Under the pieces are notes generated by a model that saw only the letters and a program-made list of their open reading frames with translations, had not been told where the DNA came from and did not search any database. From the sequence record NC_061446.1: a stretch of 64,000 nucleotides of DNA. One strand, written 5' to 3'. A program made the translations under genes and the position numbers. The stretch's first letter is position 1. Every line of letters begins with the position of its first letter. Below, piece by piece: positions 22,065 to 54,020 of this stretch.

Positions 22065-23828
22065 TTAGAACGCCTTACGCTCAATATTTGAATAAAGAGT
22101 ATCGTAAGGTTCTGAGTACAGTTCAGGTCCGCGTTGTGCGCGAATCGTCACGTAGCCTGTGTGACGGTTGAACGCTGTGATTTCGACAGTCGGCTGTTTA
22201 GGCTTGATAGTCGCATAAATCGGAGCATCCAACGTTGGCTCGTCTGTCTGAATCTTATTTACAGATTGCAGCGCAGCGCCAGAGATAGCAGGCAGATTAA
22301 AACGCAGTTCAGCGCGTTTCTGGCCGAATGCCGCGCGAATCATACCGTTCTCCAACTCTACACCGTTTTGCTTGAGATATGCAGCGATGCGACGTCCGAT
22401 ACCAGTAAGCTGATCGCGAGTGCGCGGGTCAAACGTGCCTTCGAAGCTGATTGCTTCTGCGGGCTGACGTACAGACAAATGCAGGCCTGTGTTGAAATAG
22501 CCTTCGGTCAGTAGACGCAGGATTTCTTTCACGACCTCTTTGGTGTTCGTCTTAATAGCAGCGATACGCAGTTCAGGAACGTCCACTTTAATCGGGTCAC
22601 GAAGCTCGGTCTGGTTGTCCATATAGCCGAGTGAGATATGCTTCGCATTGGCATACGTGTGTTGAAGCACACCAGTCGCGCGAATCAATACAGAGCCACC
22701 TTTTGCGAGATCGTAGAGTTCATCGCTGGTGGTTGTGCTGAACAGGTAATAGTCCGTAGGTACTGCCATGCGATTAACAGCTTCAATCGCTTTGGTTTGA
22801 GCTTCTTTGACAGTTGAGCCAAAGACTACGCGGCTACGATTCGGCTGGGCAGCAGATACAGGGAAGAACGCACCATATACCACGCTAACGTTTTTCTTAA
22901 TCGGGCGCTCGGACTGAATCTTCTTACCGCCAGGCAGAGAAGGTAGCTTAACGCCCACCAGCTTACCTTTGACGATAGCTTTGTTCTCTTTGACCGGCTT
23001 GAGGCTGTCAATGAGTTTCGCCAGATCAGCACCGCTAAGAATCTTCTCCAGCGGAACAGCGAGGTTCTGCGGCAGATAGTGTTTCTTGCGGAACATATAG
23101 ATAACGGTGTCTTTCTTGATCTGCACTGGCGTAGCCATGTTGCGACCAACAACACCGACAGGCTGGAACGTATTTGCTTTGTCATCACCGATGGAGCCGA
23201 ACTGCTTAGTGAACTCAGTCTGGCCGATGATGTTAGCAGCGCGTAAATGGCCACGAATGATGAACACGATTTTCGGGTCATCTTTCATGCGCAACTCGTA
23301 GCGGTCACGGTTCAGATAAACCATGCTGTACTTGTCGCCTTTCTCCAGCTCCAGATCGTACTCGTCGTTAGCGTCATCAACAACGACTTTCTTACCTACG
23401 TAGGTACCGTACGTGCGCGGGCCAGCAGACTCAGAAGCAATCTGCAATGCTTTGCCGCTGTTAGATAGGGAGGCAGCGAAGTCCATAACAGCGGGCATCA
23501 GGTCTAAAGACGATGCTACAGCGTATGGCTTGCGCTTCTCACCAAGATGCAAATGAACAGCGCTACTGCTGGACATGAACACGGTTGTGCCTACATCTTC
23601 GTGTGTACCAGCGAAGTGCATACCGCTAATACGTTCGATGATGTTTGCGTTGAGCGATTGGAAGTTTACTTCGCTACCTGCGGTGAAGTCATAAATTTCA
23701 CCGTTACGCCACGCATAGGCAACGTTGTTTGAGCTTAGACCCACGAACGCATCACCCAACTGACGCACGGTCAAGGGCATGATGCTCAGGTCACGAATAA
23801 TCGAGGACTGCTTTTGAATGAGGTTCAT
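22065..23828 (-). CDS. Putative head-internal protein with the shared ~65-aa domain
   Basis: 587 aa; YGTYVGKKVVV...KGDKYS...KDDPKIVF follows several S-x-S motifs (IASESAG). Confidence 0.65.
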   Translation of the reverse strand: MNLIQKQSSIIRDLSIMPLTVRQLGDAFVGLSSNNVAYAWRNGEIYDFTAGSEVNFQSLNANIIERISGMHFAGTHEDVGTTVFMSSSSAVHLHLGEKRKPYAVASSLDLMPAVMDFAASLSNSGKALQIASESAGPRTYGTYVGKKVVVDDANDEYDLELEKGDKYSMVYLNRDRYELRMKDDPKIVFIIRGHLRAANIIGQTEFTKQFGSIGDDKANTFQPVGVVGRNMATPVQIKKDTVIYMFRKKHYLPQNLAVPLEKILSGADLAKLIDSLKPVKENKAIVKGKLVGVKLPSLPGGKKIQSERPIKKNVSVVYGAFFPVSAAQPNRSRVVFGSTVKEAQTKAIEAVNRMAVPTDYYLFSTTTSDELYDLAKGGSVLIRATGVLQHTYANAKHISLGYMDNQTELRDPIKVDVPELRIAAIKTNTKEVVKEILRLLTEGYFNTGLHLSVRQPAEAISFEGTFDPRTRDQLTGIGRRIAAYLKQNGVELENGMIRAAFGQKRAELRFNLPAISGAALQSVNKIQTDEPTLDAPIYATIKPKQPTVEITAFNRHTGYVTIRAQRGPELYSEPYDTLYSNIERKAF

Positions 23829-23836
23829 ATAAATCC

Positions 23837-24271
23837 CTAATACGAAACAATGCGGAAGGCGTTCTGCTTGAGCAGGTTGAGATTACCCAGCATCAGGCTA
23901 TACGCAAGAGTACCGTGCTGTTCAATCAGACTGTCAGGTACAATTGACCCGAAGTAAAGAGCTTTGTCTGGTCGAACATTAATCTCTTCGCCGGTAGACT
24001 TCATTGCGTCAGGGACAACGAAGCACCACGGTTCAGCAACGTACTTACCTTTGACGTACTGAATCCTATAACCAACAGCCATGTGCTGGTCTTTGGTAGG
24101 ACGGTACGCGAAAACATCCGTGTTCTGCTTACGCGATTTGCGGACCGAGAACAGAGCCATAGTGAGGAAGCGCTGTTCGAACTGCGGTATGAACGCATTG
24201 TCTTCGCAAATCTTTTTTAGTACCGCCTCTTGTCGTGCGCGAGGCATCGACGCGTAGAGGTTTAGATTCAT
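23837..24271 (-). CDS. Hypothetical protein, 144 aa
   Basis: Coupled to tmk by an ATGA overlap; no recognised motif. Confidence 0.7.
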   Translation of the reverse strand: MNLNLYASMPRARQEAVLKKICEDNAFIPQFEQRFLTMALFSVRKSRKQNTDVFAYRPTKDQHMAVGYRIQYVKGKYVAEPWCFVVPDAMKSTGEEINVRPDKALYFGSIVPDSLIEQHGTLAYSLMLGNLNLLKQNAFRIVSY

Positions 24272-24882
24272 GACAGCTTGGCGAGAATTTGACGGACAAC
24301 ATCAGACACCGAATTAACCTCAGTGTCGATAATCAAATCGAAACCACCAGGTACTTCGAGGTAGCGTTGGTTGTATTGCTCATACACTTCTTTGGTCTGA
24401 CGCTTCTCAATACGGTCTTCACCGCCAATGCGAATCTTCCGACGCTCAATAGAAGTTTCATAGCTACACGTCAGCAGCACGGTCAGGCGGTTCTCAGGAG
24501 CAAGTGCTTCCCAAGTATGCTGGTAGATGTGCGCGTTAACGTCGGACTCACCAGCCTGATAAACGTAGGTTGATGGGTACCCGCGATCGGCAATAATGAT
24601 CGTGTTTGGTTGATTGTCGAGGATGCGCTCATACGCAGTCATCGTTGAGGAACGCGCGGCAAGGAACAGGAGCAGTTCAGTACGTGGGTCCATGTCCTCG
24701 TTAAGAGGATTTGAATTAGACAGCAGAACATCACGAATGTGTTCAGCTAACGGCGTACCGCCCGGCTCACGTAAGCGTAAAGTATTAATGCCACGCTGCG
24801 TCAGTATTTCAGAAAGAGCAGTACATACGGTGGACTTACCACCGCCTTCGCCGCCTTCGATTAAAACATAGGTTGGTTTCAT
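24268..24882 (-). CDS. tmk: Thymidylate kinase (start revised to ATG 24882)
   Basis: P-loop IEGGEGGGKST, LREPGGT, ELLLFLAAR, ADRGYPST; TAAGGA SD. Confidence 0.93.
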   Translation of the reverse strand: MKPTYVLIEGGEGGGKSTVCTALSEILTQRGINTLRLREPGGTPLAEHIRDVLLSNSNPLNEDMDPRTELLLFLAARSSTMTAYERILDNQPNTIIIADRGYPSTYVYQAGESDVNAHIYQHTWEALAPENRLTVLLTCSYETSIERRKIRIGGEDRIEKRQTKEVYEQYNQRYLEVPGGFDLIIDTEVNSVSDVVRQILAKLS

Positions 24883-24893
24883 AATGCGATTCC

Positions 24894-25385
24894 TTAGGCA
24901 AATCGCCCACCACGCCATGCGGCCTTAATGAGCAACTTCGCCACGATTTCGTTCTTCATTGTCTTTCGCTTGGCATTGCTTCTGACAAATGCAGAGCCGA
25001 ACTTATTCACGACAATCAAACCGCAACCAAGGTCCTTGATACGGTCAATGATTCTATCGCCGTGAGATTCAAACAGCCGTTCATCAATGATGAAGTACAT
25101 ACGCATACAGAAAGGCAAATACTTGTGCCACTTCTTATCGGTGTTGAAGTCGGCCCAGCAACTCTTTACCTCAGTGATAATCATATCGCATTTGGTATTC
25201 AGGCAGAACACGTCAGCCCTTAAGTTACCGTGCTTAATCAGTCCAAGTTCAACGTGGCATGAATAGCGTTTGTCAATCCAGTAGCGTTGTGCAGCTTCGG
25301 TAAGAAAGGCCGTCTTATCAGGACGGCTCATTGATTTAAATACAGCGGTCTGAATGGGTTCAGCTTTGCGCCGCTTATAGGCCAT
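24894..25385 (-). CDS. MmcB-like PD-(D/E)xK nuclease/DNA repair protein
   Basis: RADVFCL...ITEVKSCWADFNTDKKWHKYLPFCMRMYF matches the MmcB pattern. Confidence 0.8.
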   Translation of the reverse strand: MAYKRRKAEPIQTAVFKSMSRPDKTAFLTEAAQRYWIDKRYSCHVELGLIKHGNLRADVFCLNTKCDMIITEVKSCWADFNTDKKWHKYLPFCMRMYFIIDERLFESHGDRIIDRIKDLGCGLIVVNKFGSAFVRSNAKRKTMKNEIVAKLLIKAAWRGGRFA

Positions 25386-25833
25386 ACGAGTCGATAATGT
25401 CCAGGGCTTGCTCTACGATAGGACGAAGTTTCTTATCCAATTTACGCAGAGCCTTATCCGCTTTGAACCATTTGCGTTCACGCGTCAGGGCTTCGTCGTA
25501 CTCGGTCAGCATAGTCTTGACCTTCATGACGTACCATTCAACGTGTTGCTCACGGCCGGTCTTGCCTTTGACGTAGCGCATAATGTCTACGAAGTCTTTT
25601 GGCTTACCGAGGACACCAGCTTCCTCCATGGCCTCTTTCAGAGCACTGTCCAGTGGAGTCATTCCCTTCTCCACCCCGCCTTTCGGCAGACCCCAGTTGC
25701 CAGCGTGAGTGGTACGAATCAACAACAGCTCAATCGTACCATCACTTCTTTTTCTGTATGGAATAACGCCCGACTGTTTGCGAGGTTTCTTCTCGCTTGG
25801 CAGTTTAGCAGACAATGATACGTTGATCATCAT
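25375..25833 (-). CDS. Nudix hydrolase
   Basis: WGLPKGGVEKGMTPLDSALKEAMEEAGV Nudix box. Confidence 0.9.
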   Translation of the reverse strand: MMINVSLSAKLPSEKKPRKQSGVIPYRKRSDGTIELLLIRTTHAGNWGLPKGGVEKGMTPLDSALKEAMEEAGVLGKPKDFVDIMRYVKGKTGREQHVEWYVMKVKTMLTEYDEALTRERKWFKADKALRKLDKKLRPIVEQALDIIDSYGL

Positions 25834-26333
25834 AATGAATCGAGTCCCCGTGGCAGGTCAACATCCCAGCTACCGGCATTGTCTTTCCACAGGCCCTGAT
25901 CTTGCAACGTTCTGTAGGCATCAAACAGAGTTGCACGGGCTTGCACCGAGACTTCATTCGAACCGGCGGCACCTAAACTATAGCTGTACATACAGCCTGG
26001 GAAGTATTGTAGACGGCAGGACTCAAACGTGTCAAACACAATTTGGCCCTCTGCGTCGGCTACAACGCAGTGTGATGCCATACCACCTTGACCCAAAACA
26101 ACGATCTGATAGTCAGGATGTTTGTTGTAGACACGTTGAATAAACTCGGCTGCTTCTGCAAACGGTCGGGCTACTTGCGCAGCACGGTGACAGTTCTGTT
26201 CTACCGCAGACTCAGAAAGAGAGCGAGCGCCAGTCAGATTCATAGCCGAGGCAAAGATAAGAGTTGTGAGCGCTTCAGGCTCAACAGCAGTGGGGAAAAA
26301 CTTTGTGCCCCACGCTTGAGATAGCGAAAGCAT
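25830..26333 (-). CDS. Hypothetical protein with N-terminal LSLS / LSES motifs
   Basis: 167 aa; SD AAGGAG; late-promoter motif 30 nt upstream. Confidence 0.7.
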   Translation of the reverse strand: MLSLSQAWGTKFFPTAVEPEALTTLIFASAMNLTGARSLSESAVEQNCHRAAQVARPFAEAAEFIQRVYNKHPDYQIVVLGQGGMASHCVVADAEGQIVFDTFESCRLQYFPGCMYSYSLGAAGSNEVSVQARATLFDAYRTLQDQGLWKDNAGSWDVDLPRGLDSL

Positions 26334-26362
26334 GGACGTCTCCTTATACGATAGTCTCAGCT

Positions 26363-26370
26363 AAATTAGC
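26363..26370 (-). promoter_or_regulatory. GCTAATTT putative late-promoter motif
   Basis: Sits in a short intergenic gap 30 nt upstream of the start at 26333. Confidence 0.65.
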
Positions 26371-26371
26371 G

Positions 26372-26662
26372 TCAGTCGTGCGGACAGTTAAGCACTTGCT
26401 TGCGATTCTGCATAAAATCACGTGGAGCAGGACCAGAGATTACGACAGCATGTTTAACACGATGCTTTGTCGGTTTCTTTGATACATTGCAGCCAGCATG
26501 AGACAGTGCATCAAACGCAGCAGCAGCGGCCGGACCGGAAATAACGAGCGTGTGGGCGAAGAAAGGCTTACCCACTTTCTTCATTGTTCTGCCCATCAGT
26601 TCGTAGATGTGTTGCGCTTCTGCAACAGACGGCACAGTACCGCACCAAATATCGAACGTCAT
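26372..26662 (-). CDS. Hypothetical protein, 96 aa
   Basis: Coupled to the upstream ORF by an ATGA overlap. Confidence 0.65.
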   Translation of the reverse strand: MTFDIWCGTVPSVAEAQHIYELMGRTMKKVGKPFFAHTLVISGPAAAAAFDALSHAGCNVSKKPTKHRVKHAVVISGPAPRDFMQNRKQVLNCPHD

Positions 26663-27384
26663 TTCGCACCGTCCTTAATCATAAGAACGCCATTGAAAAT
26701 ACCGAACTTATCAGTGAAGCCGCTGAGGACATTATGGAGACTGCCGTCAGAATCAGGGCTGCCGTAAGGATCAAAAGCTGTGACGTCGATTTGCAAATGA
26801 GATGAACTGATGGTATCGCGTCCCTTTTCCGCAAGAAAGAGGGTATGGCCAGAAAAGCGCTGCTTATCAGTAATGAGCACACCCATGTTATTCCACGTAC
26901 GGGAAGAGGTTTCCAGCACAAAGACAGACGCTTCGAAAAAGTTGCATCCCAACTCAGGCTTGATCTCTTCGATGTAGTGAGCATCTTCGTGGTCAGTAAC
27001 AACAACGTCCACCGTAATGAAATCAGCTTCATTGCGACGGTTTCGCAACCACTGCCGCATACAGCGTTCAAAGTAGTCAGCCATCGCACAACAGATGCAG
27101 CTAAAGTTGGACGGGTCTTTCTTGGCGCGCGGTATGGCTGTAAGGCTGCGTTCATCAAATTTCCAGCTAACGTGATCAGTAACGAGGGTACCACTCTGCA
27201 TCTCAACTTCTTCATCGTTGATAAAGAAAAGGTTGGAGCGCTGCAAAGCGATGTTGGACATGACGTGAAGCGCACTGCTCCGTAGACCAAGCGGATGCTG
27301 AATCATAACACGGGCAGTAACGACACGCGGAACTCCGCCGTCCAAATAAGCGAAGTTCATTACACGTTGTAACACGGTGCGCAT
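26659..27384 (-). CDS. Hypothetical protein, 241 aa
   Basis: Fills the gap downstream of the spike gene; AAGGA SD. Confidence 0.7.
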   Translation of the reverse strand: MRTVLQRVMNFAYLDGGVPRVVTARVMIQHPLGLRSSALHVMSNIALQRSNLFFINDEEVEMQSGTLVTDHVSWKFDERSLTAIPRAKKDPSNFSCICCAMADYFERCMRQWLRNRRNEADFITVDVVVTDHEDAHYIEEIKPELGCNFFEASVFVLETSSRTWNNMGVLITDKQRFSGHTLFLAEKGRDTISSSHLQIDVTAFDPYGSPDSDGSLHNVLSGFTDKFGIFNGVLMIKDGAK

Positions 27385-27394
27385 AATGCGTCCT

Positions 27395-28183
27395 TTAGTT
27401 CAGGTTGATTGTCTGTCCATTTACAGATACATCTTGACCCGCTTCAATGCTAACAGCACCTTTCACGTCAAGCACATCATCGCCTTTAACAGTGACCTTG
27501 CGGCTGCCACCAATCTCAACAGTCTGGTTGCCTGTAATCTTAGTATACTGATTACCGCCGTCACCCTTAGCAGTACCTTTGAACTTGATACGCTTCTTTG
27601 GGTCAGGCTTGAGATTCTTAGGTGTCATCGTTGGGTCATTCAGAATGTAGTCAGGAATATCATTCTTCGTACCTGTGATGATAAGCTGTTGGTTGCCAAC
27701 AATCGTTTGGTTAACGTCGCCCATAATCGTCATGTGAAAATCACCAGACGTCACGAGGAAGTGTTCGTTGGTCATACGATCAATGATAAGTTGGGTGCCT
27801 GTAGACAGACGAATACCCATGCGATGTGGATAGTTCACCTGAAACTCAGGCAACATGTCGGCTTGCGTCATACGCACGTCAGTAGTATAGATACCTTCAT
27901 GCAACTGACCAGTAGGGAATTTAACGCCTACCTTGCCACCACGAGTAGGAATGAACTGAGCGCCGAACACGACTCCTTGACTCCCACCCTTGAGTCCTTC
28001 CAGATGACCAACAGCCGGGCGAATCCACGGAATAGACTCGTCAGGAATATCGTCAGTCAGACCCATAATACGCGCACGAATCTGGCAGATTTTCTGAGGG
28101 TCGTTATTGTCGATAACGATAGCCTCATACACCATCTGCGGGTCGATGCCTTTCTTTGAGTTAACTGTATTGAGTGGAATCAT
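27395..28183 (-). CDS. Baseplate central spike (gp5/gpV-like OB fold plus beta-helix)
   Basis: YEAIVIDNNDPQKICQIRARI...IPWIRP...P.RGGKVGV.F; C-terminal VxG repeats. Confidence 0.88.
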   Translation of the reverse strand: MIPLNTVNSKKGIDPQMVYEAIVIDNNDPQKICQIRARIMGLTDDIPDESIPWIRPAVGHLEGLKGGSQGVVFGAQFIPTRGGKVGVKFPTGQLHEGIYTTDVRMTQADMLPEFQVNYPHRMGIRLSTGTQLIIDRMTNEHFLVTSGDFHMTIMGDVNQTIVGNQQLIITGTKNDIPDYILNDPTMTPKNLKPDPKKRIKFKGTAKGDGGNQYTKITGNQTVEIGGSRKVTVKGDDVLDVKGAVSIEAGQDVSVNGQTINLN

Positions 28184-36337: not shown

Positions 36338-37012
36338 TTAGTCCTCTACAATAACAAGCACAGGTCTAACGGCATCGTCGAACTTGAGGAACGTAGCACC
36401 AACCAGATAGCCACCGTTTTCAATCTGCTTCACGACTGCTTTCTCGTAGTCCGTTTCCCACTTGTCACGCTGATTGGCTTTGTAGCCTTCAAACGTTTCT
36501 GACGCGTCGTAGTAGTTATACGTTCCGCCAGTCGGCATTGGGATTCGAGCAAGGAACTCAATACGACCAGCGTTTTTAAACTTGGCCTTACGTATCTCCT
36601 GAGTCAGCTTCGTGTTCTCGGCTTTAGAGCCAGGAACAGCTTTGAATGGTTTCTTTGGTTGTGGTTCTTTCGGTGCGGCAGGAAGTTTCTCACGCGCTGG
36701 AGTATTCTTGTCACTCGCTTTCTTAATGCGAATGCCGGACACTGTGCCAGTGAACGGACGGCTGCGGCCAAGCAACGAACGTGCTGTAGGCGCATCGACT
36801 TCAAACACTACTGACGGGTCATCCTTATGCAGCACATAGAACTTGTTACGCTTTGCAGCCAAGATACCGAATACATCTTTTTCCTCGATATCGGCTTCAT
36901 GCTCCTTGTTCTCAATGCTTACCTTGCGCTTACCTTCGAAGCGGTACCAGTCGCAGTCTTGAATCCCTACGGCAGGTGTCTTACGTGCGCTTTCGCTCAG
37001 TAGAATAAGCAT
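36338..37012 (-). CDS. Putative head-internal protein with the shared ~65-aa domain
   Basis: MLILLSESA N-terminus, then WYRFEGKRKVSI...EKDVFGI...KDDPSVVF; Pro/Lys linker. Confidence 0.65.
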   Translation of the reverse strand: MLILLSESARKTPAVGIQDCDWYRFEGKRKVSIENKEHEADIEEKDVFGILAAKRNKFYVLHKDDPSVVFEVDAPTARSLLGRSRPFTGTVSGIRIKKASDKNTPAREKLPAAPKEPQPKKPFKAVPGSKAENTKLTQEIRKAKFKNAGRIEFLARIPMPTGGTYNYYDASETFEGYKANQRDKWETDYEKAVVKQIENGGYLVGATFLKFDDAVRPVLVIVED

Positions 37013-40886: not shown

Positions 40887-41987
40887 TTAACCACGAACAG
40901 CTTTAGCTACAGAGCGCACGTTCGCCAGAGTGAAGGAGAAGGTGCTAGACAGCAGCCAGCCGCGGTCGGTGTTACCCTGGTTCGCGCCAGAAGTCGGGGT
41001 AGACTGGGTACCGCCACGAGTGGTGTACACTGCGTGGTAGTCCTGGTCAGCCAGAACATACAGTTCGCCGTCGTGCAGTACGCGGTGTTCCGGAGCGCGG
41101 AAGCCGTCAGTTACCAGTTCCATACCCAGCAGGGTACCCAGACGACCAGTGGTGATCAGGTCGTATTTGCTTACCGGGTCCAGAGCAGAGGAGAACTGAT
41201 CGTTACCAACGATATCGTTCCAGTAGTCCTGCGCCATCACAGCGGTGCTAACAGGCAGCGGCCATGAAGACACAGAATTTTTCAGAGTAGACAGCAGACG
41301 CGGAGTCAGGTCGCCGTGTACCCAGGTGATCGGGTTAGCAACACCGACTGCCTGGTCACAAGCGCGTTTCCACAGACGGTCTTCTGCAACCATGATAGAA
41401 GACAGGCCGTCCTGTTGAGCGCGGTCCAGCAGATCGCCGTTGATTTGGTCCAGGTCCATTTTGCTAACACGAATGTTAGATTTCAGTTCGAACTCAGCAG
41501 GCGTGTAAACACGGCCGCGGAATTGACGGTAACCGAAGTCAGTAGGACCGGTCGCGATTACAGCTTCTGCCTGGTGGATTTTCAGTTCGATACGAGCAAT
41601 GTCGCCCTGACGAACGGTAGCGCCTTTACAAACTTTGCGCAGCAGGCCAGCACGTTCAGCACGGTCTTCGATAGATGCAACGATAGAAGCACCCAGAGAA
41701 GCCCACTTCTCGCCGCTGCTATCAGCAACAGCTTCCTGAATCAGCTCGACTTTCTCAGCGTCGGTCAGACCGTTCTGAGCGCCAGAGTGAGAGTGAACGA
41801 GGTTGCCGTTGGCAGCTTCGTCCATCAGACGGCTGATGTTACGCAGGAGGTCTTTGTTCGAGTAGGCGTTGATTTCGCCGGTGCTCTCACTCAGAGCCAG
41901 ATCGCCTTTACCACCGAAGCGCAGGTCTTCGATTGGGGCACCGTTACGCAGAGTTACTTTAGCGCCGCGCATTAAGGAATTGTTCAT
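40887..41987 (-). CDS. Major capsid protein (HK97-like fold)
   Basis: 366 aa, strongly biased codons, IMVAEDRLW, GRLGTLLGMELVTD; follows protease, scaffold and decoration-like genes. Confidence 0.85.
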   Translation of the reverse strand: MNNSLMRGAKVTLRNGAPIEDLRFGGKGDLALSESTGEINAYSNKDLLRNISRLMDEAANGNLVHSHSGAQNGLTDAEKVELIQEAVADSSGEKWASLGASIVASIEDRAERAGLLRKVCKGATVRQGDIARIELKIHQAEAVIATGPTDFGYRQFRGRVYTPAEFELKSNIRVSKMDLDQINGDLLDRAQQDGLSSIMVAEDRLWKRACDQAVGVANPITWVHGDLTPRLLSTLKNSVSSWPLPVSTAVMAQDYWNDIVGNDQFSSALDPVSKYDLITTGRLGTLLGMELVTDGFRAPEHRVLHDGELYVLADQDYHAVYTTRGGTQSTPTSGANQGNTDRGWLLSSTFSFTLANVRSVAKAVRG

Positions 41988-42804: not shown

Positions 42805-44820
42805 TTACATGCGGCGCAGACGGGACAGCTTATCTTCGAATGAGCCAGTGGAAGCTGAACTCTGGGATTGAACAGGTACGTCGCTCTGAGTCAGCAGTTC
42901 AGCGGCGTTGACCGGAGCTTTAGGCTGCGCGGCTACAACTTGCTGTTGAACAACTGGAGCACGTTCTGCGGTAACAGTACCAGCAGCCGCGTCGATAGAC
43001 TCAGAGATTTCGTTCTGCGCGACTTCGGACTTATTCATCAGGTCCATCGCTTTTGACAGCGCGGTCGTCAGGAAGTCTTTGCCGTGGGCGATGAATGCGC
43101 GTTCGACTACAGCGCGTGGTTCTTTGATGCCTGCTGCGGACAGCGAGCTAACCAGGCTTTCGACGATTGGGTTACGCACATCACCCCAGAAGTTTTTGGT
43201 AACGCCCAGCTGGGATGCAGACAGAGCAGCGACGAAACGATCAGTGTAAGCTGAGGTCGCTTCTTCGATAGTGCCCGTAACGTTCGCAGTAGCTTCGCTA
43301 ATACGTGCGTCAGATTCTGCCACCAGCAGTGCATCTACCGGCATTTCGATCTGATACGGCATAAAGCCGAATGCTTCACAAGTACCGGTCACTCCAGCGC
43401 TGTTAAGCGAGTGTGATACTGCACGGATGAAATTATCAGATGCGAAAGATTTCGCAGCGTTTTCTTCGCCAACTGCACCAGACACAGAAGCGAATGTTGC
43501 GCGAGCAATCGGCTGGCCGTCGTAGTACATATGTACAGTGTCGAGCTTGCCAACAGCGCGGCTCAGGCTAACCAGCTGAGGGTCAAGCGTGCCGTGTTGT
43601 GCTTGCGCGGTAGACAGGCTGTTGAAGACGCGGCTGACTGATTTGCTTTCAGAATCAAAATCATCTTCGTCATCGACGTCGAGATCATCTTCTTCCAGTT
43701 CTTCCTCGTCGTCGAGGTCTTCATCATCGAGGTCTTCATCCTCGTCAATGTCGTCTTCGTCTTCGAGATCGTCGTCAGAGCTGGATTCTGAATCGAAGTC
43801 CTCGTCCTCGTCTTCTTCTTCGAGGTCGTCCAGGTCTTCGTCATCTTCCAGATCTTCATCGTCAATGTCGTCCAGATCGTCTTCATCCAGATCTTCATCG
43901 TCGAGGTCGTCTTCGTCATCAATATCATCTTCATCATCGTTAGACGATTCAGAGTCGAAGTCTTCGTCCTCGTCATCAGATGAATCATCTTCATCCTCGA
44001 GGTCTTCTTCTTCGATAATATCAATGTCGCTGTCGTCGTCGCCAGATTGGGATGCAATCGGCTCGTCGACCAGCGCGGCAGAACAATGCGCACAGAACAC
44101 AGGCTCTTCATCAGAGCTTACAGTGAACGGCTGTTCGCAGTTAGCGGAGCAGCTATAGATGTGCGCTTCGACTTCGCCATTGGCGGCGTTGCTGGACAGA
44201 GCAGTGATAGCTTCTGGAGCTTCCTGCGCTTCGCAGTTCTCAACGGCCTGGCCGGTGTACGGGTCGAAGTTTACGGTAGTAGCAGCGTTGAAGCTACCAG
44301 TACCGGACAGTGCGGTAAACGCGTGTGCGTTGCTCAGAGCCAGAGCGAAGTTGCGTTGTGCAGCTTCGGCAGTCTCGCCGGTAGCAACCAGACCAGCGTG
44401 TTCAATCTGTTCGTCAGCAGAAGCGGATTCGGCCAGGAACTGAGTAACACGTTCGTCGGTGATTTCGGACAGGTCAGCAGAGCACGATGGGCAGCAGCCC
44501 TGAACCAGCGCGGCAGAATCAGAGATAACGTGGCTACCACAACCATCAAGACAGATGGTGTAATGAGCTTTCACATCACCAGCAGAAGACTGCGACTGGA
44601 CTTCGGCTTTCTCAACCAAATCAGGATGCTCCACCAGCAGTTCTTCACCGCCGTTCGGATTGTAGAGGTCAGCGCCACTTTGCGAAGCAAAGCCTACACC
44701 TTCAGCAGAACCATAAATCATCAGGTTCTGACCGGTTGCAGTGCGGCGAAAATTCTCTACTGCCTGATTATGGTTTTGACCGACACACAGGATACCCGCG
44801 AGTTGGGTAATCTTTGGCAT
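42805..44820 (-). CDS. Prohead scaffold/core protein with two Cys-rich modules and a long acidic tract
   Basis: GAGG SD before MPKITQ; CLDGCG...CCPSCS and CSANCE...CAHCS; ~125-aa D/E tract. Confidence 0.7.
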   Translation of the reverse strand: MPKITQLAGILCVGQNHNQAVENFRRTATGQNLMIYGSAEGVGFASQSGADLYNPNGGEELLVEHPDLVEKAEVQSQSSAGDVKAHYTICLDGCGSHVISDSAALVQGCCPSCSADLSEITDERVTQFLAESASADEQIEHAGLVATGETAEAAQRNFALALSNAHAFTALSGTGSFNAATTVNFDPYTGQAVENCEAQEAPEAITALSSNAANGEVEAHIYSCSANCEQPFTVSSDEEPVFCAHCSAALVDEPIASQSGDDDSDIDIIEEEDLEDEDDSSDDEDEDFDSESSNDDEDDIDDEDDLDDEDLDEDDLDDIDDEDLEDDEDLDDLEEEDEDEDFDSESSSDDDLEDEDDIDEDEDLDDEDLDDEEELEEDDLDVDDEDDFDSESKSVSRVFNSLSTAQAQHGTLDPQLVSLSRAVGKLDTVHMYYDGQPIARATFASVSGAVGEENAAKSFASDNFIRAVSHSLNSAGVTGTCEAFGFMPYQIEMPVDALLVAESDARISEATANVTGTIEEATSAYTDRFVAALSASQLGVTKNFWGDVRNPIVESLVSSLSAAGIKEPRAVVERAFIAHGKDFLTTALSKAMDLMNKSEVAQNEISESIDAAAGTVTAERAPVVQQQVVAAQPKAPVNAAELLTQSDVPVQSQSSASTGSFEDKLSRLRRM

Positions 44821-44896
44821 GGTTAAAACCCTCATAGAATTTAGTCGTTGAATCGACAGGTTGAAATTAAAATATGCAGAAAAAATTCAGGTATTT

Positions 44897-46021
44897 TTAA
44901 ATTTTTCTGCTATCAATGTCAGTCTGAGGAATATATCTGTTTTCGAAGTATTTCGAGACAATTTCAACACCATTTAAGGTATATACGTTGCGCAGGCTAT
45001 ATCCCCAAACCATCAGCTCCGCAAGCGTTGCGAAGTGCTCGGCGGGTACCGAACTAATGGTTCGCGCATTAAGCGAATCTGGATGGATTTTCTTACCCTT
45101 GATGGCCTGATCGAACTTCATGCGATCAACGTTACGAATCATCGTATGGTCCACAAAATGGGCCAGTTCGTGAGTAATAACGTGCGCCATACTCAGGCTA
45201 TTATATCCACCAAGTAAATGCACCAACTGCGCAGGATGGATTGAAATAGCGCCATACAGGAAGCCGTGTACGCGATACGTTGCGATATGGCTACCACCAC
45301 TATCCGAGTTAGCTTTTAACAGACCAACATACAGACGTTTGAATGGCAGTGCTATGTTCAGACCAATGCCAGGCATGACGTTTTCCTGAATGTCTTTAAG
45401 CACATAATCAGGAGGACTAACGCCGTTCTTCTCAAGCGTAACGCCCGGCACACGCAGGTCATCCATACCCATTATTTCAAGATGCACTTTACCGCACTTC
45501 TTAACAGGCTTGGTGGCGTAGTTGTTTGGCGTACCACCCGGATAAATTGCTGAGGCATATTGCAGTGGTTTGAAATTACCAAAATCAGGCATATCGTCAA
45601 CACGACGCTGAATAGCCTTTAATGAATCTGGCGTGTCTTCCTCAGCAGAGTCCTCAACAGATGCTTCCGGCTCAGGTTCTGGTGCAGGCTTTTTCTTGAT
45701 AGAAACTGGTTTGGGTTTTGGTGCTGGTGGCGCAGGCTTCTTCTGCTTCTCCTCATAAGGGGTGAAGTCAAAGCCAGGCTTAAAGAGCGCATCAGGTTTT
45801 GCAGTGAATGGGCGACTGTTCTGAATGAGCTTGTCACCGTCTTCTCCACTGATTGCATAGGCCTGATCGTATTTAGGATGGGCTATGTAGTACAGGTCGC
45901 TGTTCACTTTGAGAAGGCCAATGACCTCGCGCGGCTCCATGTGGACACCGTTTGAGATCATTGCCGCCTGACCGAGATAGCGATAGTACGAATAGTCAGC
46001 TATTGCTAAACCTTGTGGCAT
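44897..46021 (-). CDS. Shared-domain protein with a C-terminal HExxH zinc metallopeptidase (start revised to 46021)
   Basis: TGATG coupling to the protease stop; YYRYLG...REVIGL; VITHELAHFVDH (45158-45172) and a downstream AEHFA. Confidence 0.7.
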   Translation of the reverse strand: MPQGLAIADYSYYRYLGQAAMISNGVHMEPREVIGLLKVNSDLYYIAHPKYDQAYAISGEDGDKLIQNSRPFTAKPDALFKPGFDFTPYEEKQKKPAPPAPKPKPVSIKKKPAPEPEPEASVEDSAEEDTPDSLKAIQRRVDDMPDFGNFKPLQYASAIYPGGTPNNYATKPVKKCGKVHLEIMGMDDLRVPGVTLEKNGVSPPDYVLKDIQENVMPGIGLNIALPFKRLYVGLLKANSDSGGSHIATYRVHGFLYGAISIHPAQLVHLLGGYNSLSMAHVITHELAHFVDHTMIRNVDRMKFDQAIKGKKIHPDSLNARTISSVPAEHFATLAELMVWGYSLRNVYTLNGVEIVSKYFENRYIPQTDIDSRKI

Positions 46022-46800
46022 CAGGCCATCCTTAACAGATGTTCTTTGTATGTTGCAGCACACGCGAACGCTGGGTCGTCTACGCTACTGCACTCAAAGC
46101 CTGTCAGCATCTTGCAATCACGATAGACCAATCGGCCAGTACGCGCATCAAGATACGTTGGTTTGTTGAACGCCGTATGCGAACAGAAGTTACGATGTTT
46201 AGGCGTAACCAACTGACCACAGATACTGCACTTATACGCACGATAGGTTGTGCCTTTGCTGTACGTGTTCAGTTCACCGCTCATGATACGATCACAGCGC
46301 TCAGGACAACGAGAACGGTCGAAGGCCAGCAGCAACGTCAGACGCGCATGGTCACCACGGAAGTTCTTGAGCTTGGACAAGTTACTGTCGAAGATCATGC
46401 CCATGGCTTGGCGATAGTCTTTGTTGTTGTGTTCGATAAACGTCGGCTTACCAATGAACGTCTGATATGCAAGACGGCCCTGGTCAGGGTTGAACGTTAA
46501 CCACTCCTGCAGGCTAAACGCATCACCATTCGTGTTCGGCAGTTCAGTGATGTTTACCGGAACAGGCACGATGATGTAGTCGCGGATGTTGCGTGACGTG
46601 TTATACATCTCAGCCGCTTTAGGCAGCCACACGTTCACGTCAAGATTAAAAGAGCCTGTCTCAATACCGAAACGCGACGCATCCACACGGATAGACTTAG
46701 CTGTACGGCTAACATCTTCCTTGTGCATATCAATCGCGTTCAGTCCGACGAGGCCCATGTCCGAGGTATCAAACGACTCGGAGCGAATGGACTGGTCCAT
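46021..46800 (-). CDS. Prohead maturation protease (herpes/HK97-like serine protease fold, zinc-ribbon insert)
   Basis: PNTNGDAF, FIGKPTFIEHN, YSKG, CSICG...CSH, ECSSVDDPA. Confidence 0.8.
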   Translation of the reverse strand: MDQSIRSESFDTSDMGLVGLNAIDMHKEDVSRTAKSIRVDASRFGIETGSFNLDVNVWLPKAAEMYNTSRNIRDYIIVPVPVNITELPNTNGDAFSLQEWLTFNPDQGRLAYQTFIGKPTFIEHNNKDYRQAMGMIFDSNLSKLKNFRGDHARLTLLLAFDRSRCPERCDRIMSGELNTYSKGTTYRAYKCSICGQLVTPKHRNFCSHTAFNKPTYLDARTGRLVYRDCKMLTGFECSSVDDPAFACAATYKEHLLRMA

Positions 46801-46810
46801 CGTGTACTCC

Positions 46811-49212: not shown

Positions 49213-49228
49213 ACATGCCTCATTTGGG

Positions 49229-50152
49229 TTATACTAAAATGTTGCCGCTATCCCACCACTGCTTGCCGTAAATATCAGACAGGCGATAGTCAAGAATAAG
49301 TGGCTGGTCAAGGTCGACTTGCGTTATGGTTCGCATTAATGAAGGACTCCAAACTGTTTTCTCCTCAGTGTAGAGTCTAATCTCCAATTCAATGTCGCCT
49401 TGTGAGTTCTTCGGTACGAACGGACTGGAGAAGTCTCCATCAAAGCCCGCACCAAGAGAATCGTCAAAGTAAGTGTACGCACGAATTTCTTCCGCACTGT
49501 TAATCACGGTCGGCGCATACGTCTGACGGTTATAGTAGGACGTGTAGTCCGCAACGGTTGATTGCATTGGCACACGTCGCTTGTAGATACGTGTTACACC
49601 TTTGCTGTCTGTTTCTGCGCGGTACTGATTGTAATACCAGTTTATCTGCGCAAACTTAACAGGCTTCAAAGTCTCCTGCCCGGCAGCGTACTTCATGAAC
49701 GGCTTCGCAGTGAAACGGTGGTATGTCTTCTGCGTGTTCAATCGGTAAAGCAGAATCTGGTACGTGTACCACTGATAAACATCAAGGGTAATCGTTCCTG
49801 AGTCAGACTGTTGCGTACCGTTAGTCAGGATGTAGGAGAAGCAGTCAGCACCAACGTAACCACTTCTCGGACTGTAGATAAACGCTTCGTTGAAAGTGTT
49901 TAGCCGCACAGTGCCTACCATAGGGTCATTGACCTTAATAGCAGAAAGGCGCCAACCCCTTTGAGCTGGCACCTTATCAAGCACACCCTCAGTAGGGCTA
50001 TGCAGTGTCACTTCATCACGAGCGCCCTGTAAGATCTTTTCGAGTGTTATCTCAGTTTCACCTGAGTTACGCACCCGCACTGTCAGGTTCGGAGCCAGTG
50101 GCTTATAGTTACGCCAGTAGTCGAACGTACAAGGCAAAGAGAGCATAATCAC
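49229..50152 (-). CDS. Virion protein with a cadherin/Big-like Ig domain
   Basis: GTVRLNTFNEAFIYSPRSGYVGADCFSYILTNG. Confidence 0.65.
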   Translation of the reverse strand: MIMLSLPCTFDYWRNYKPLAPNLTVRVRNSGETEITLEKILQGARDEVTLHSPTEGVLDKVPAQRGWRLSAIKVNDPMVGTVRLNTFNEAFIYSPRSGYVGADCFSYILTNGTQQSDSGTITLDVYQWYTYQILLYRLNTQKTYHRFTAKPFMKYAAGQETLKPVKFAQINWYYNQYRAETDSKGVTRIYKRRVPMQSTVADYTSYYNRQTYAPTVINSAEEIRAYTYFDDSLGAGFDGDFSSPFVPKNSQGDIELEIRLYTEEKTVWSPSLMRTITQVDLDQPLILDYRLSDIYGKQWWDSGNILV

Positions 50153-52107
50153 TCCAGTTTGTATTTGCTCTTGAACTCCGCAATGCTCATAACAGGAATG
50201 CCCTTGTCAATCGCTTTCTGTAGCTTCGCGGAACCAGAGCCAGGGTCTTTAGCGATCAGTATCGTCGTATCAGCTTTCATGCTGTCAGACGCTGTACCGC
50301 CAAGTTGGACAATACGTTGCATCAATTCTTTATCGCGGATGCCTGTGAACGCTACGTTAATCCCTTTCAGTTTGGCGCTAACCACCTTCACCTTCTTCGG
50401 AGCAACGAGAGTCACTTCCATCTCAACAGCCATCAGATAAGACTTAATGGCCGCATCTGCGATCTGTGGAGCCAGCTTATCAACACCGTGCATACTGCTA
50501 ATCTTTGTTGCTAGGTCAGCAGTATTACCTTTCTTCAAATAAGATTCGAGGTTAGGCACAGCATCAACAACCTTATCAAACGTCGTGTTAGCGCCGCGCA
50601 TGAAGTATGAAGCGGTAGCTTTAAGCCACGTATTCATCGGTACGCCAGCTTTCAACGCTTTCAGGTCTTTGGCCAGTTGACGACCACGAGAGTCACCAAC
50701 GATCTCACGCAACGTTGCCATAGGAGTCATGAACAATTGCTGAGGAGTTTTAACACCTGAAGCAACAAGCAGTTTACACGTACTCGGTCCAGTGTTCGCA
50801 ACGTCAAGCCCTTTCAAGAACGAGCCAAGCATACGAGAGTCAGCAGCACTGGTCTTCGTCTTAGCAACGAACTCAACGCCATTGATCTTGTACTGTACGT
50901 CAGGCAGCTTAGGCTTCTTAGCAGGCTTGAGAATCTCCATGATGTATGGGATTACCTTGCCGCTTCGAATCAACTTAACCTTAGCACCTGGGCCAAGAGG
51001 ACGCTTAGGTCCCATGACAGCACCTTTCTTCTTGGGCTTGAGATAGCCGTGCTCAACGTAGAAACCGTTGTGCGCAGAAGCACGTTCAACCGTAACACCG
51101 CCAGGCATAACAGTAGGCGGGAAGATTGCAACAGGAGCCAGCACACCGTACTTGGACTCTTGATAGATTACGTCTTTGACAGTCACGATAACAGTGTCCG
51201 ACTCAACGTTCATCTTGAACTTGAAAGCGTGTTTAGGATTGCTCGCAGTAGCTTTCGGCGTAGGAACATCGCGGGTCATTACAATCCCATCGAGTTCATA
51301 CTTTGCCTTAGCGATGCGTTTGTCCAACCACGGAATGAGTTCTTCTTCCGACTCAAAACGCATAGGGCCGAAGTGGCGAACTACTTCGAATCCCCATTTC
51401 TCCAGCAGCTTGAACTGCGAAGACTGTTTGAGTGTAGCACCTTTACCGCCGATGATACCGAAGCATACCATGTGGACGTACTTGAACTCTTTCGCTGTTT
51501 CGAAGTTACGCACCAGACCGGACGCTGCGTTACGAGCGGCTTTGAAGCGACCACCAGCAGACTCATGCAGCTTTGCCATAAAGGTCTTGTATGGTATTAA
51601 CGCTTCACAGCGTAACACCACTTGGCCCTTCTCAGAGATTTTCTGAGGAATACGCATAGCAGGCAGGTGCTGCGACACGTCTTTACCATGAGTTGCATCG
51701 CCACGAGTAAGCGCACGAACAGGCACGCCACCCTCGTAAACGATTTCAATACTCAGGCCGTCGAGCTTGTCAGTCAGAATCCAGTCAACGTCTTCGGCGA
51801 GAGCTTTGGTTAGTTGCTTACCACCCAGAGTGAACTGGTCGAGACTTGCCATTGGCACAGGCAGCTTAACGTCTGAATCATCACGCGCACCAACCTTGCG
51901 CGCCAGCTTAGATTTAGGCCAGCGCTTGTCGATGTAGGTACGGATGTAGTCGTACACAGCGTCCGATATCAGACCTTCCGAATCAGTGTGGAACGCATCA
52001 TCAAGATGCGCCACAAGTTTCGTTGCCTGCGTCAAATTGAGCGTGTCGAGAACCTTATCAGGATTCTTTTCGAGCCGCTTCAAAGAGATTTGCATGTTAT
52101 TCTCCAT
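50149..52107 (-). CDS. ligA: NAD-dependent DNA ligase
   Basis: Motif I KLDGLS, ALTRGD, LRCEA, RNAASG, ELDGIV, AFKF, OB fold, HhH, C-terminal BRCT (VAFTG). Confidence 0.95.
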   Translation of the reverse strand: MENNMQISLKRLEKNPDKVLDTLNLTQATKLVAHLDDAFHTDSEGLISDAVYDYIRTYIDKRWPKSKLARKVGARDDSDVKLPVPMASLDQFTLGGKQLTKALAEDVDWILTDKLDGLSIEIVYEGGVPVRALTRGDATHGKDVSQHLPAMRIPQKISEKGQVVLRCEALIPYKTFMAKLHESAGGRFKAARNAASGLVRNFETAKEFKYVHMVCFGIIGGKGATLKQSSQFKLLEKWGFEVVRHFGPMRFESEEELIPWLDKRIAKAKYELDGIVMTRDVPTPKATASNPKHAFKFKMNVESDTVIVTVKDVIYQESKYGVLAPVAIFPPTVMPGGVTVERASAHNGFYVEHGYLKPKKKGAVMGPKRPLGPGAKVKLIRSGKVIPYIMEILKPAKKPKLPDVQYKINGVEFVAKTKTSAADSRMLGSFLKGLDVANTGPSTCKLLVASGVKTPQQLFMTPMATLREIVGDSRGRQLAKDLKALKAGVPMNTWLKATASYFMRGANTTFDKVVDAVPNLESYLKKGNTADLATKISSMHGVDKLAPQIADAAIKSYLMAVEMEVTLVAPKKVKVVSAKLKGINVAFTGIRDKELMQRIVQLGGTASDSMKADTTILIAKDPGSGSAKLQKAIDKGIPVMSIAEFKSKYKLE

Positions 52108-52133
52108 TCGTCAGTAACACTGGTATTTACAGT

Positions 52134-54020
52134 CTAGCTGGCGATTGGGTCTTTGTTGACGGGATAATCTTCGGCCATGTCGAGCACACGATTGAACAGC
52201 TTAGGCGCCATATCCTTCACATGTTCTGCATAGTCAAAGAGGTTCTGTTTACGCGCACGGTTAACACGTACCTGACGTACTTCATCAGGGCTGTTGGTAA
52301 TATCGTACAGCGTATAGATAACGATGTTGTCGGATTTGGAGTGGGTGCTAACACGCAACACAACCCAATCGCGTTTCAACTTAGCATCAGCACGGAACTG
52401 GAGCACGTCGCCTTCTTCTGCTTCCTCTGCGCGAGCGCTTGGAGTAGATTTGTTGGCAGCAGCGATTTTCTTCGCTGTCTCTTTCGATTCCTGCTCGGCA
52501 GCAGCAACGTCAGAGTCCGTGTCTTCGTCGGCAGATGTTTCGTCTACTGCATCAGATGTGTCTGCATCATCTTCGGCGTCTGAGGCATCTTCGTCGCTGT
52601 CGTCAGATTCTGATTCATCTTCACCTTCCGAATCAGCTCCTCCGTCGTCGGCATCGTCATCATCCACGGATTCGGCGCTGGAGTCGTCCCCCTCATCAGA
52701 ATCGTCTGTATCGCTATCGTCAGAGTCTTCTTCCACATCGGTGTCTTCCTCTTCTTCGCCGTCATCTTCGGAAGTGTCTTCGTCCTCTGAAGGTTCTTCT
52801 TCCTCTTCTTCATCGGCTGGTGCAGGTGCAGCTTTCTTGCCTTTAGCACGAACCTTAGGCGGAGGAGTATCTTCCTCATCCTCTTCCGGTTCGTCAATAT
52901 CAGACAGATCGAGAGAAGGTTCTTCGTGGTCTTCTGAGTCATCACCGCCAAACAGTGAGCCTACAGAATCTTCGATGTTGAACGCATCGCCAGCGAATGG
53001 ACTACGAGACAGAATATCTTCCAGCTTCTGCTCGTCGAGGTCAAGATCGATACCTACTTCTTCGATCTCGTCATCCAGGATTTCTTCTTCAACCACACGA
53101 ACACGCTTACCACGACGGTCAATACCATCTTCGTAGACAGTGCGCACTTCGGCTTTAGGCGCTTCGATCTCACCTGACTTAACCTTGTTACGCAGGTCAC
53201 GCATTTCAGCAGAACGCTCTAAGGCTCTCTTACGCGCTTCTTTCTGGAGTTCTTTGCGTTGTTGCTTCTGCTCCAGAACCTTCGCGTTGTTGGCCAGGCG
53301 TGTTGCTTCTTCCTGCTCTTCCTGAGAACGGCGGCGAGCACGACGCACAACACGGCGATAAGCCTTAATCGTATCTACGTCAACTGTACCTTTCGGCCAG
53401 TCGTTCATTGGCAGAATGTTGGTGTCATGAATCAGCAGGTCATACTGCGCATCATCGACTTTGAGGAACATGCCCTCAGAGTTAATGACGATGCCGCCTT
53501 TACCCTGACGCAAGAAACGAACACCAATCATGTCGTTCTTGTACAGCTTGGTCATACCCTTAGAAGTCTTCACAGGGTATTCTGGACTTGCGACCATGCG
53601 CCACTGGTAGTTATCAAAGTCGATGCCGTAGACAGCTTCTGACTTGACCTTACGCGGGCTGAAACGCGCCGCATCGAACTGAGAGCGCATTAACTGACGC
53701 TGCAATGTTTGTGCACCAGCAGTCTTGGTGCGTTTACCTTCACGGTTAACAACGTCTGGCACCTTACGCAGTTTAGATGCGCGTTCAATCAAGAACAGGC
53801 CAGTTGCTTTATCAAGCGGGAAGTCAACGTGCGGCATATCTGGGAAAATGAGAGTGTAGCGTCCGCCATTACGCAGCGGGAGAATGCCGAATACATCGCC
53901 TTCACGAATCATGCGCTTATGCGTTCGTTGTGCGACTTCTTTTCCACGAGGACCTGTATACTTCATCCACGCGTACTTCGACACGGCATCCTGATAAGAT
54001 GCAGATACGGAAAGTACCAT
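52134..54020 (-). CDS. Putative head-internal protein: two copies of the shared domain, coiled coil, acidic tract
   Basis: MVLSVSAS N-terminus; WMKYTG...EGDVFGI and YQWRMV...KNDMIGV repeats; ~190-aa D/E-rich tract. Confidence 0.7.
   Translation of the reverse strand: MVLSVSASYQDAVSKYAWMKYTGPRGKEVAQRTHKRMIREGDVFGILPLRNGGRYTLIFPDMPHVDFPLDKATGLFLIERASKLRKVPDVVNREGKRTKTAGAQTLQRQLMRSQFDAARFSPRKVKSEAVYGIDFDNYQWRMVASPEYPVKTSKGMTKLYKNDMIGVRFLRQGKGGIVINSEGMFLKVDDAQYDLLIHDTNILPMNDWPKGTVDVDTIKAYRRVVRRARRRSQEEQEEATRLANNAKVLEQKQQRKELQKEARKRALERSAEMRDLRNKVKSGEIEAPKAEVRTVYEDGIDRRGKRVRVVEEEILDDEIEEVGIDLDLDEQKLEDILSRSPFAGDAFNIEDSVGSLFGGDDSEDHEEPSLDLSDIDEPEEDEEDTPPPKVRAKGKKAAPAPADEEEEEEPSEDEDTSEDDGEEEEDTDVEEDSDDSDTDDSDEGDDSSAESVDDDDADDGGADSEGEDESESDDSDEDASDAEDDADTSDAVDETSADEDTDSDVAAAEQESKETAKKIAAANKSTPSARAEEAEEGDVLQFRADAKLKRDWVVLRVSTHSKSDNIVIYTLYDITNSPDEVRQVRVNRARKQNLFDYAEHVKDMAPKLFNRVLDMAEDYPVNKDPIAS

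Follow-up and report, generated by a model that had tools for sequence, protein, structure and literature searches.

The KMPT-N domain in four proteins of Erwinia phage pEa_SNUABM_30: predicted fold, fusion partners and a possible docking function

What do four dispersed, unannotated proteins of a jumbo phage have in common, and what could their common part do? The question is raised by a stretch of 64,000 nucleotides (hereafter the window) that is 100% identical to the genome of Erwinia phage pEa_SNUABM_30 (NC_061446.1, genus Alexandravirus, 259,771 bp), a window position being the record position minus 62,000. The phage belongs to a group of jumbo myoviruses that includes PaBG, Lu11, NCTB, Y3, Yoloswag, AD1 and JA (PMC7412058). 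A first-pass annotation had described a domain of about 65 amino acids (aa) in five copies among four proteins, and proposed that this SH3-like module loads different effectors into the prohead. All four open reading frames (ORFs) were recovered on the minus strand where that annotation had placed them, and they correspond to gp113, gp130, gp139 and gp146, each named "hypothetical protein" in RefSeq (Table 1).

Table 1. Positions of the four KMPT-N proteins, their domains and the head genes discussed in the text (window coordinates)
Feature	Position	Strand	Description and basis
gp113 (P0001), 587 aa	22065-23828	-	N-terminal domain, KMPT-N and conserved C-terminal region of ~380 aa; phrog_32352; ortholog alignment
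gp113 N-terminal domain, aa 1-129	23442-23828	-	Without Pfam match; weak hhalign similarity to Tad6
gp113 KMPT-N copy, aa 135-213, internal	23190-23426	-	Pfam PF20294 E 4.3e-18 at aa 141-201; own HMM
gp130 (P0002), 224 aa	36338-37012	-	KMPT-N, Pro/Lys-rich disordered linker and C-terminal alpha/beta domain
gp130 KMPT-N copy, aa 15-95	36728-36970	-	Pfam E 2.5e-20; AlphaFold2 model; 2evr SH3b Z 6.9, 69 residues aligned
gp139 (P0003), 374 aa from ATG	44897-46021	-	KMPT-N, Pro-rich linker and predicted compact HExxH zincin
gp139 KMPT-N copy, aa 3-80	45782-46015	-	Pfam; own HMM iE 3e-6; 3ehq SH3 Z 5.5, rmsd 2.1 Å
gp139 predicted zincin-like metallopeptidase domain, aa 178-350	44972-45490	-	Structural neighbours; HELAH at 45158-45172
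Second Pfam KMPT-N match in gp139, aa 206-269	45215-45406	-	49 bits; within the zincin domain
gp146 (P0004), 628 aa	52134-54020	-	Two tandem KMPT-N copies, basic helical stretch, acidic region and C-terminal domain
gp146 first KMPT-N copy, aa 10-90	53751-53993	-	Pfam E 4.8e-19; hhalign against gp130 family E 3.9e-15
gp146 second, divergent KMPT-N copy, aa 128-215	53376-53639	-	25-sequence profile; second matches in orthologs; no Pfam match
gp146 acidic region, aa 311-520	52461-53090	-	~210 aa, net charge -89
Head maturation protease gene gp140	46021-46800		PHROG label
Capsid protein gp136	40887-41987		ALSEST motif at aa 31-36
gp138 ATPase	42805-44835		VISDSA motif at aa 103-108

Identity, copy number and fold of the shared domain

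The shared module is the Pfam family PF20294, KMPT-N ("KTSC and Metallopeptidase N-terminal fusion domain"). The Pfam search matched gp113, gp130, gp139 and gp146 with E-values of 4e-18 to 4e-30 and with 65.7, 72.8, 104.4 and 68.7 bits, respectively, all above the curated gathering cut-off of 28.9 bits. Scanning the complete genome in six frames with the model returned five matches and no others. A hidden Markov model (HMM) built from gp130 orthologs only recovered the copies in the other three families with independent E-values (i-E) of ~1e-10 to ~1e-3; the other three proteins of the window scored near 1e-6, and the most divergent gp139 orthologs (Yoloswag, JA11) fell below significance. When the family profiles of the four N-terminal-type copies were compared with each other, five of the six pairs gave E-values of 4e-15 to 5e-5. 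Only the gp113/gp139 pair was weak by itself (E 0.07), these two being linked through gp130. The Pfam matches, the gp130-only HMM and the profile pairs agreed, and the claim of one domain in four dispersed proteins was upheld.

The observation as such is already known, because the domain is in Pfam and orthologs of these proteins are labelled with it; the gp130 orthologs, for instance, bear a UniRef name derived from KMPT-N. A literature search on the name KMPT-N found no paper mentioning the family, and a jumbo-phage survey that mentions a group-specific zincin as well as SprT-like peptidases does not include the domain. A sequence search against solved structures yielded nothing meaningful for any of the four proteins. 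What the present analysis adds is the fold assignment, the divergent tandem copy of gp146, the placement of an extra gp139 match in the zincin fold, the census of cargo and the junction motif. The KTSC and SprT-like peptidase fusions of the Pfam name occur in relatives, and gp139 carries a downstream HExxH zincin; the SH3-like fold, the tandem copy of the gp146 type, the fusions to upstream Tad6 or Acb1 and the S-x-S-A junction motif are not contained in that name.

The fifth copy, in gp146 (aa ~128-215), was missed by Pfam. Small profiles of this region gave weak signals against KMPT-N, always in register. With a 25-sequence profile, hhalign aligned the region end-to-end with the pooled domain profile over 78 columns (probability 96%, E 1.6e-9), and several gp146 orthologs contain a significant second KMPT-N match (e.g. 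5.5e-6 and 2.7e-9). On this profile evidence, the region is a real, divergent KMPT-N copy. Since it aligns with the domain profile over its full length, the count of five copies in four proteins was correct.

The fifth Pfam match of the genome scan is instead a further segment of gp139 (aa 206-269, numbered from the ATG start), which the model scored at 49 bits in gp139 and at 24-56 bits in its orthologs. In the AlphaFold2 model it forms a helix, three strands and a helix immediately preceding the HELAH helix, and a seven-sequence profile of it showed no similarity to the barrel profile (E 0.5). A sixth barrel was ruled out by this position and by the absent profile similarity; the segment is not a free KMPT-N copy because it lies within the zincin fold and is unmatched by our own profiles. 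The Pfam match may reflect either a mixed Pfam seed or an old partial duplication. The two Pfam-matched segments of gp139 have a short similar stretch in common (GLLKxNSD ... AIS).

The AlphaFold2 models of gp130 and gp139, which are independent of each other, were concordant and presented six short strands, a helix and a short SRPFT strand. The gp130 model (mda17891700d5) had a mean predicted local distance difference test score (pLDDT) of 78.5, with domain blocks of 77-92, and the KMPT-N domain blocks of the gp139 model (madd37f638c57) had pLDDT values of 72-89. The closest structural neighbours of both KMPT-N models were SH3-type barrels. The SH3b domain of an endopeptidase (2evr) gave Z-scores of 6.9 against the gp130 model and 5.1 against the gp139 model. 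The SH3 domain of human OSF (3ehq) gave 5.2 and 5.5, respectively, the latter with a root-mean-square deviation (rmsd) of 2.1 Å over 59 residues; its superposition rmsd across both models was 2.1-3.0 Å. FeoA followed with 4.5-4.7 against gp130 and 3.9 against gp139, and the SH3 domain of a Clostridium phage endolysin was listed for the gp130 model (Z 4.5) and not for gp139.

Overall, the best SH3b/SH3 matches had rmsd values of 2.1-3.6 Å over 59-69 residues, and Foldseek gave probabilities of 0.9-0.99 against SH3-type barrels, but with E > 0.05. The bacterial SH3b and eukaryotic SH3 domains (the N-terminal domain of 2evr, and 3ehq) are small barrels of five to six strands, as is the modelled KMPT-N domain, and of the same size, whereas their sequence identity to KMPT-N is 7-13% and the C-terminal helix and SRPFTG strand of KMPT-N are atypical for SH3 domains. 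We therefore regard "SH3-like", the term of the first-pass annotation, as a fair description, of moderate strength, of the modelled six-strand barrel and helix: the best neighbours in two models speak for it, while the Z-scores of 5-7 are modest, lie within the range of a common arrangement and are not proof of common descent.

Two details of the domain arrangement required correction. The module had been described as always lying near the N-terminus; the gp113 copy occupies aa 135-213 of 587, after a domain of 130 aa, and the copies in Tad6 and Acb1 fusions are likewise internal. A Pro/Lys linker following the module is clear in gp130 and gp139, whereas the linker of gp146 is basic and not Pro-rich.

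Distribution of the family and its fusion partners

The KMPT-N family is small: a profile search of 1.84 billion representative proteins gave 159 clusters at E<=1e-3, which sort into the same architecture classes as the window proteins. Every phage of the PaBG group that was tested contained three to six Pfam matches per genome (two to five over the cut-off), distributed over the same four kinds of protein. The members that could be traced belong to PaBG-like phages or to phage-like or jumbo-sized contigs, some of ~240 kb. This narrow phage range suggests a partner specified by the phage. The scans of the genome and of its relatives with the domain model, which had been proposed as a check, found the module repeatedly in each genome tested.

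Fusion partners were counted with Pfam in a sample of 110 members of the 159 clusters, which included one false positive and a few singletons. KMPT-N itself was recognised in 101 of the 110. The commonest Pfam-recognised partner was the SprT-like domain (18/110), followed by Tad6 (10/110, best E 4.7e-62), KTSC (8/110) and Acb1 (1/110). The false positive, P0100, came from the large profile search and is a repeat protein. Phage-encoded Tad6 inhibits ThsB, the TIR protein of Thoeris, and Acb1 is an anti-CBASS nuclease. Both modules invariably lie upstream of the barrel, in long proteins of the gp113 or gp130 type. In PaBG itself, PaBG_00107 joins KMPT-N to KTSC and PaBG_00089 joins it to an SprT-like domain. 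One to two Tad6 modules, one to two KMPT-N copies and a C-terminal region of the gp113 type are combined in an 844-aa ORF of phage NCTB (L043, ~131.1-134.2 kb) and in P0061, P0073, P0101, P0133 and P0181, and P0106 combines Acb1 with a KMPT-N-like region.

The pattern of one shared module with differing cargo, first noted in the window, therefore extends over 159 protein clusters. The cargo had been placed at the C-terminus, which holds for the zincin, alpha/beta and acidic parts, whereas in the Tad6 and Acb1 fusions the variable part is upstream. Taken together, these domain architectures showed KMPT-N to be a mobile, lineage-restricted module, joined by shuffling to enzymatic or effector parts that are unrelated to each other.

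In the C-terminal domain of gp139, HELAH is invariant in the ortholog alignment, as are H284, E285, H288, E328 and H329, and aa 178-350 of the model superpose on compact zincins, namely YbeY (Z 7.6 and 6.9), selecase (5.9), Spartan (5.4) and Wss1 (5.3). This domain showed no Pfam SprT-like match and a weak match to M57 (E 0.03-0.1). By its modelled fold and its motif, the C-terminal domain of gp139 is a zincin.

In gp113, the C-terminal region is conserved over ~380 aa in the ortholog alignment, and an IASESA motif (aa 130-135) stands just upstream of the KMPT-N copy. The N-terminal domain had no Pfam match at E<=10 and none in the genome scan, Tad6 (PF25188) included. Compared by hhalign with the Tad6 segments of proteins of the orthologous type, it gave a weak similarity (E 2.3e-4, probability 44%, 49 columns). 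The gp113 ortholog of phage NCTB has a true Tad6 (E 1.5e-43) at the equivalent position, followed by KMPT-N and the conserved C-terminal region. The gp113 N-terminal domain is thus possibly a very divergent Tad6-like module, which we offer as a lead only.

The linker of gp130 is disordered, Pro/Lys-rich and basic, with a single invariant Glu (E132), and leads to an alpha/beta domain of 90 aa in which a YNYYD-type motif is invariant. A search with the AlphaFold2 model gave only weak structural neighbours for this domain, none of them convincing. KTSC (PF13619) was considered and rejected as its identity: Pfam gave no match, and hhalign against the KTSC segments of family members reached a probability of 5% over 19 columns.

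The acidic region of gp146 contains 99 Asp/Glu residues, and the feature is kept in ~25 clusters of the gp146 type. It could mimic DNA or balance, as a counter-ion, the charge of basic internal proteins.

Gene neighbourhood, junction motif and possible function

We tentatively lean, with low confidence, towards a docking adaptor for one common partner, which would most likely be an internal component of the head or virion. The barrel would act as a protein-protein adaptor that brings differing payloads to a single phage-specified site, most likely an internal component of the assembling head or of the virion generally, and the payloads would enter the next cell together with the DNA. A payload upstream of the barrel may be freed by the head maturation protease, through a cut at the S-x-S-A junction with its Glu. 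An internal head or virion partner seems likeliest because of the narrow phage range, the mostly neutral barrels, the presence of two gene types in the head module and the nature of the cargo (peptidases and counter-defence proteins).

The gene order around gp139 bears on this proposal. The gp139 gene comes immediately downstream of that for the head maturation protease and upstream of those for the ATPase, a structural protein of the virion and the capsid protein; the relatives examined, which range from Alexandravirus to Y3, Yoloswag and JA11, retain this position in the head module. In PaBG, the second gene type, KMPT-N with KTSC, has the large terminase gene on one side and the portal gene on the other, and it has the same place in a distant, PaBG-like metagenomic phage (L089). 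There, the ORFs flanking the KMPT-N and KTSC gene (2791-7950 and 10141-13386) carry inteins and were identified as large terminase and portal by synteny with PaBG. DarA_C proteins, encoded at 9431-11185 of another metagenomic phage (L088) and at 180731-181201 of NCTB (BN7874_225), adjoin a KMPT-N protein and the gp139-like zincin, respectively; no DarA_C match was found in pEa_SNUABM_30, Y3, PaBG or JA11. DarA is a head protein of phage P1 that belongs to a packaged anti-restriction system (PMC5512222). At the position of gp139, PaBG has the virion protein gp83, for which BLAST revealed similarity neither to gp139 nor to the head protease.

Other neighbourhoods and the virion data weigh against a head or virion partner. 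gp113 follows genes for thymidylate kinase, an MmcB-like protein and a Nudix protein, gp146 adjoins the DNA ligase gene, and neither is among head genes; the SprT fusion of PaBG lies in the same DNA-metabolism neighbourhood, by thymidylate kinase and MmcB-like genes. The virion proteome of PaBG, which covers the 14 strongest Coomassie-visible gel bands only, includes no KMPT-N protein, and the paper on the Dickeya phages AD1 and JA contains no virion proteomics. The known Tad6 and Acb1 families act as ordinary expressed proteins, and we know of no Tad or Acb1 protein that is packaged.

These same points suit an adaptor that works inside the cell and has no role in the virion. Through the domain, the various proteins would share a binding partner from host or phage, such as a host-defence or replication hub, or the domain would drive homo- or hetero-oligomerisation, so that the attached parts act together in the cytoplasm. 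The cytoplasmic action of the Tad6 and Acb1 inhibitors, the DNA-metabolism neighbours of gp113, gp146 and the PaBG SprT fusion, the major PaBG bands and the generic use of SH3-like barrels as peptide-binding adaptors are all in line with it. It leaves unexplained why gp139 is kept by the head protease and capsid genes and the KTSC form between terminase and portal, as well as the enrichment of Glu at internal junctions. We consider this explanation credible, if somewhat doubtful.

The charge of the barrels bears on a different proposal, in which KMPT-N is a nucleic-acid-binding barrel, comparable to the SH3 folds of the Sso7d or chromo type, that tethers DNA-acting cargo to DNA. Several of the partners and neighbours would suit such a tether: SprT-like domains are DNA-dependent proteases, KTSC has been described as DNA-binding by the Aravind group, gp130 and gp146 have a strongly basic linker behind the barrel, and the nearby genes include those for DNA ligase, topoisomerase I and the MmcB-like repair protein. 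Four of the five barrels are nevertheless near neutral (isoelectric point, pI, ~6-8), unlike the known DNA-binding SH3-like domains, and this neutrality speaks against a classic barrel of the DNA-binding kind; the one basic barrel is the first gp146 copy (pI 10.2). Furthermore, the Tad6 and Acb1 cargo is unrelated to DNA, the strong negative charge of gp146 would repel it, and no DNA-binding barrel ranked above the peptide-binding SH3 domains among the structural neighbours. A DNA tether thus appears improbable.

The position of gp130, between two tail-tube paralogs and by the sheath gene, suggests a third arrangement, in which KMPT-N anchors accessory proteins on the virion exterior, be it the sheath, the tube or the capsid surface, and adds to its "hairy" tails, the Pro/Lys or acidic stretches serving as whiskers. 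gp146 adjoins gp147, a giant fibre-like protein that corresponds to a virion fibre of PaBG; SH3b domains are often surface-binding modules, and the phage group has been described as hairy myoviruses (PMC7412058). Tad6, Acb1 and peptidases of an intracellular type would, however, be functionless outside the particle, the gp130-type gene of PaBG lies outside the tail cluster, and the major PaBG bands include no KMPT-N protein. We regard an external anchor as very improbable.

A motif of two hydrophobic residues followed by S-x-S-A/T stands ~10 residues ahead of the barrel in about half of 175 copies. Barrels that begin the protein typically start with M-h-h-S-h-S-A, and those with an upstream payload usually have a junction of the form ...S-E-S-A... 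or ...E-S-h-S-A.... In 17 of 32 internal junctions versus 20 of 142 N-terminal ones, a Glu lay no more than three residues from the S-A (Fisher p 8e-6, a value that is overstated, as the sequences are related and their kinship was uncorrected). Such a pattern would fit cutting at the junction by a Glu-directed head protease. Against this, the Glu varies, the motif may be no more than a strand in the KMPT-N structure, and for the head protease gp140, which had no Pfam or PDB match, the PHROG label is the only pointer to its family and hence to Glu specificity. An assignment of gp140 as a T4 gp21-type enzyme was set aside, as the Pfam and PDB sequence searches did not confirm what the PHROG label indicates.

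Within the window the junction motif occurs 7 times versus ~2 expected, three of the seven being homologous KMPT-N copies. The ALSEST motif of the capsid protein gp136 is retained in Y3 and JA11 and reads LALSSST in PaBG, and a motif of the junction type also occurs once in the adjacent gp138 ATPase (Table 1). The capsid and ATPase motifs could represent a shared protease site or docking strand, or could be due to chance. In PaBG, maturation makes the capsid protein ~20% lighter, the site of the loss being left unspecified (PMC7412058); the N-terminal region, in which ALSEST lies, is where the maturation cleavage would be expected.

Returning to the docking adaptor, loading into the prohead, as the first-pass annotation had proposed, is plausible and draws indirect support only, from the gene position, the Glu-rich junction motif and the DarA_C neighbours. 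In its most complete form the proposal describes a head- or virion-loading system of PaBG-type jumbo phages: peptidases, a possible acidic DNA mimic, Tad6 and Acb1 would be docked on a component inside the prohead, payloads upstream of the barrel would be released through head-protease cleavage at the Glu-bearing S-x-S-A, and all would be injected with the DNA, disarming immunity before phage gene expression. Taken as a whole, this chain of steps is unlikely.

Relation to known loading systems and significance

The nearest precedents are the head-anchored MuF carrier domains fused to effectors and the packaged peptidase-bearing proteins described by Iyer et al. 2017 (PMC5512222). As in the present case, the MuF carriers and polyvalent proteins join one conserved phage domain to many alternative effectors, zincin peptidases included, lie near portal and terminase genes, and have been suggested to be carried in the head and injected from it (PMC5512222). 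MuF and KMPT-N have no sequence or fold relationship, and KMPT-N proteins have one to two cargo domains versus 2-15 in polyvalent proteins. Head residence is documented for MuF, whereas for KMPT-N it is a proposal. A further parallel is the P1 system, in which packaging depends on DarA; DarA_C proteins adjoin two members of the KMPT-N system, and pEa_SNUABM_30 itself is without DarA_C.

Another comparison is offered by the internal proteins of T4, in which unrelated cargo, including anti-defence proteins, has an N-terminal capsid targeting tag in common and the head protease cuts after Glu. The T4 capsid targeting sequence is a peptide of ~10 residues that is removed. KMPT-N, in contrast, is a folded domain of 65-80 aa, preceded by other domains in gp113 and in fusions with Tad6 or Acb1, and cleavage, if any, would take place upstream of the domain. 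Since it is folded and sometimes internal, KMPT-N is not a targeting peptide of the T4 type.

Phages carry capsid proteins that are injected ahead of gene expression, and to our knowledge the signals that select such cargo are mostly unknown outside T4, P1, Mu-like and N4-like phages. If KMPT-N were a loading signal, it would provide a compact, transplantable tag for putting proteins into the heads of jumbo phages, and inhibitors of Thoeris and CBASS could be delivered ready-made. If it were a cytoplasmic adaptor instead, the census of partners (SprT/zincin, KTSC, Tad6, Acb1 and acidic tails) would still mark likely host-takeover or counter-defence proteins in poorly studied phages. In practical terms, the analysis corrects the anatomy of four genes that had been left unannotated.

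A minor observation concerns the DNA next to gp113. The 1.34 kb between the PAAR gene and gp113 (window 20728-22064) contain no ORF >111 aa and no Rfam match; mostly unannotated in the Alexandravirus relatives, this interval retains 70-86% identity across them.

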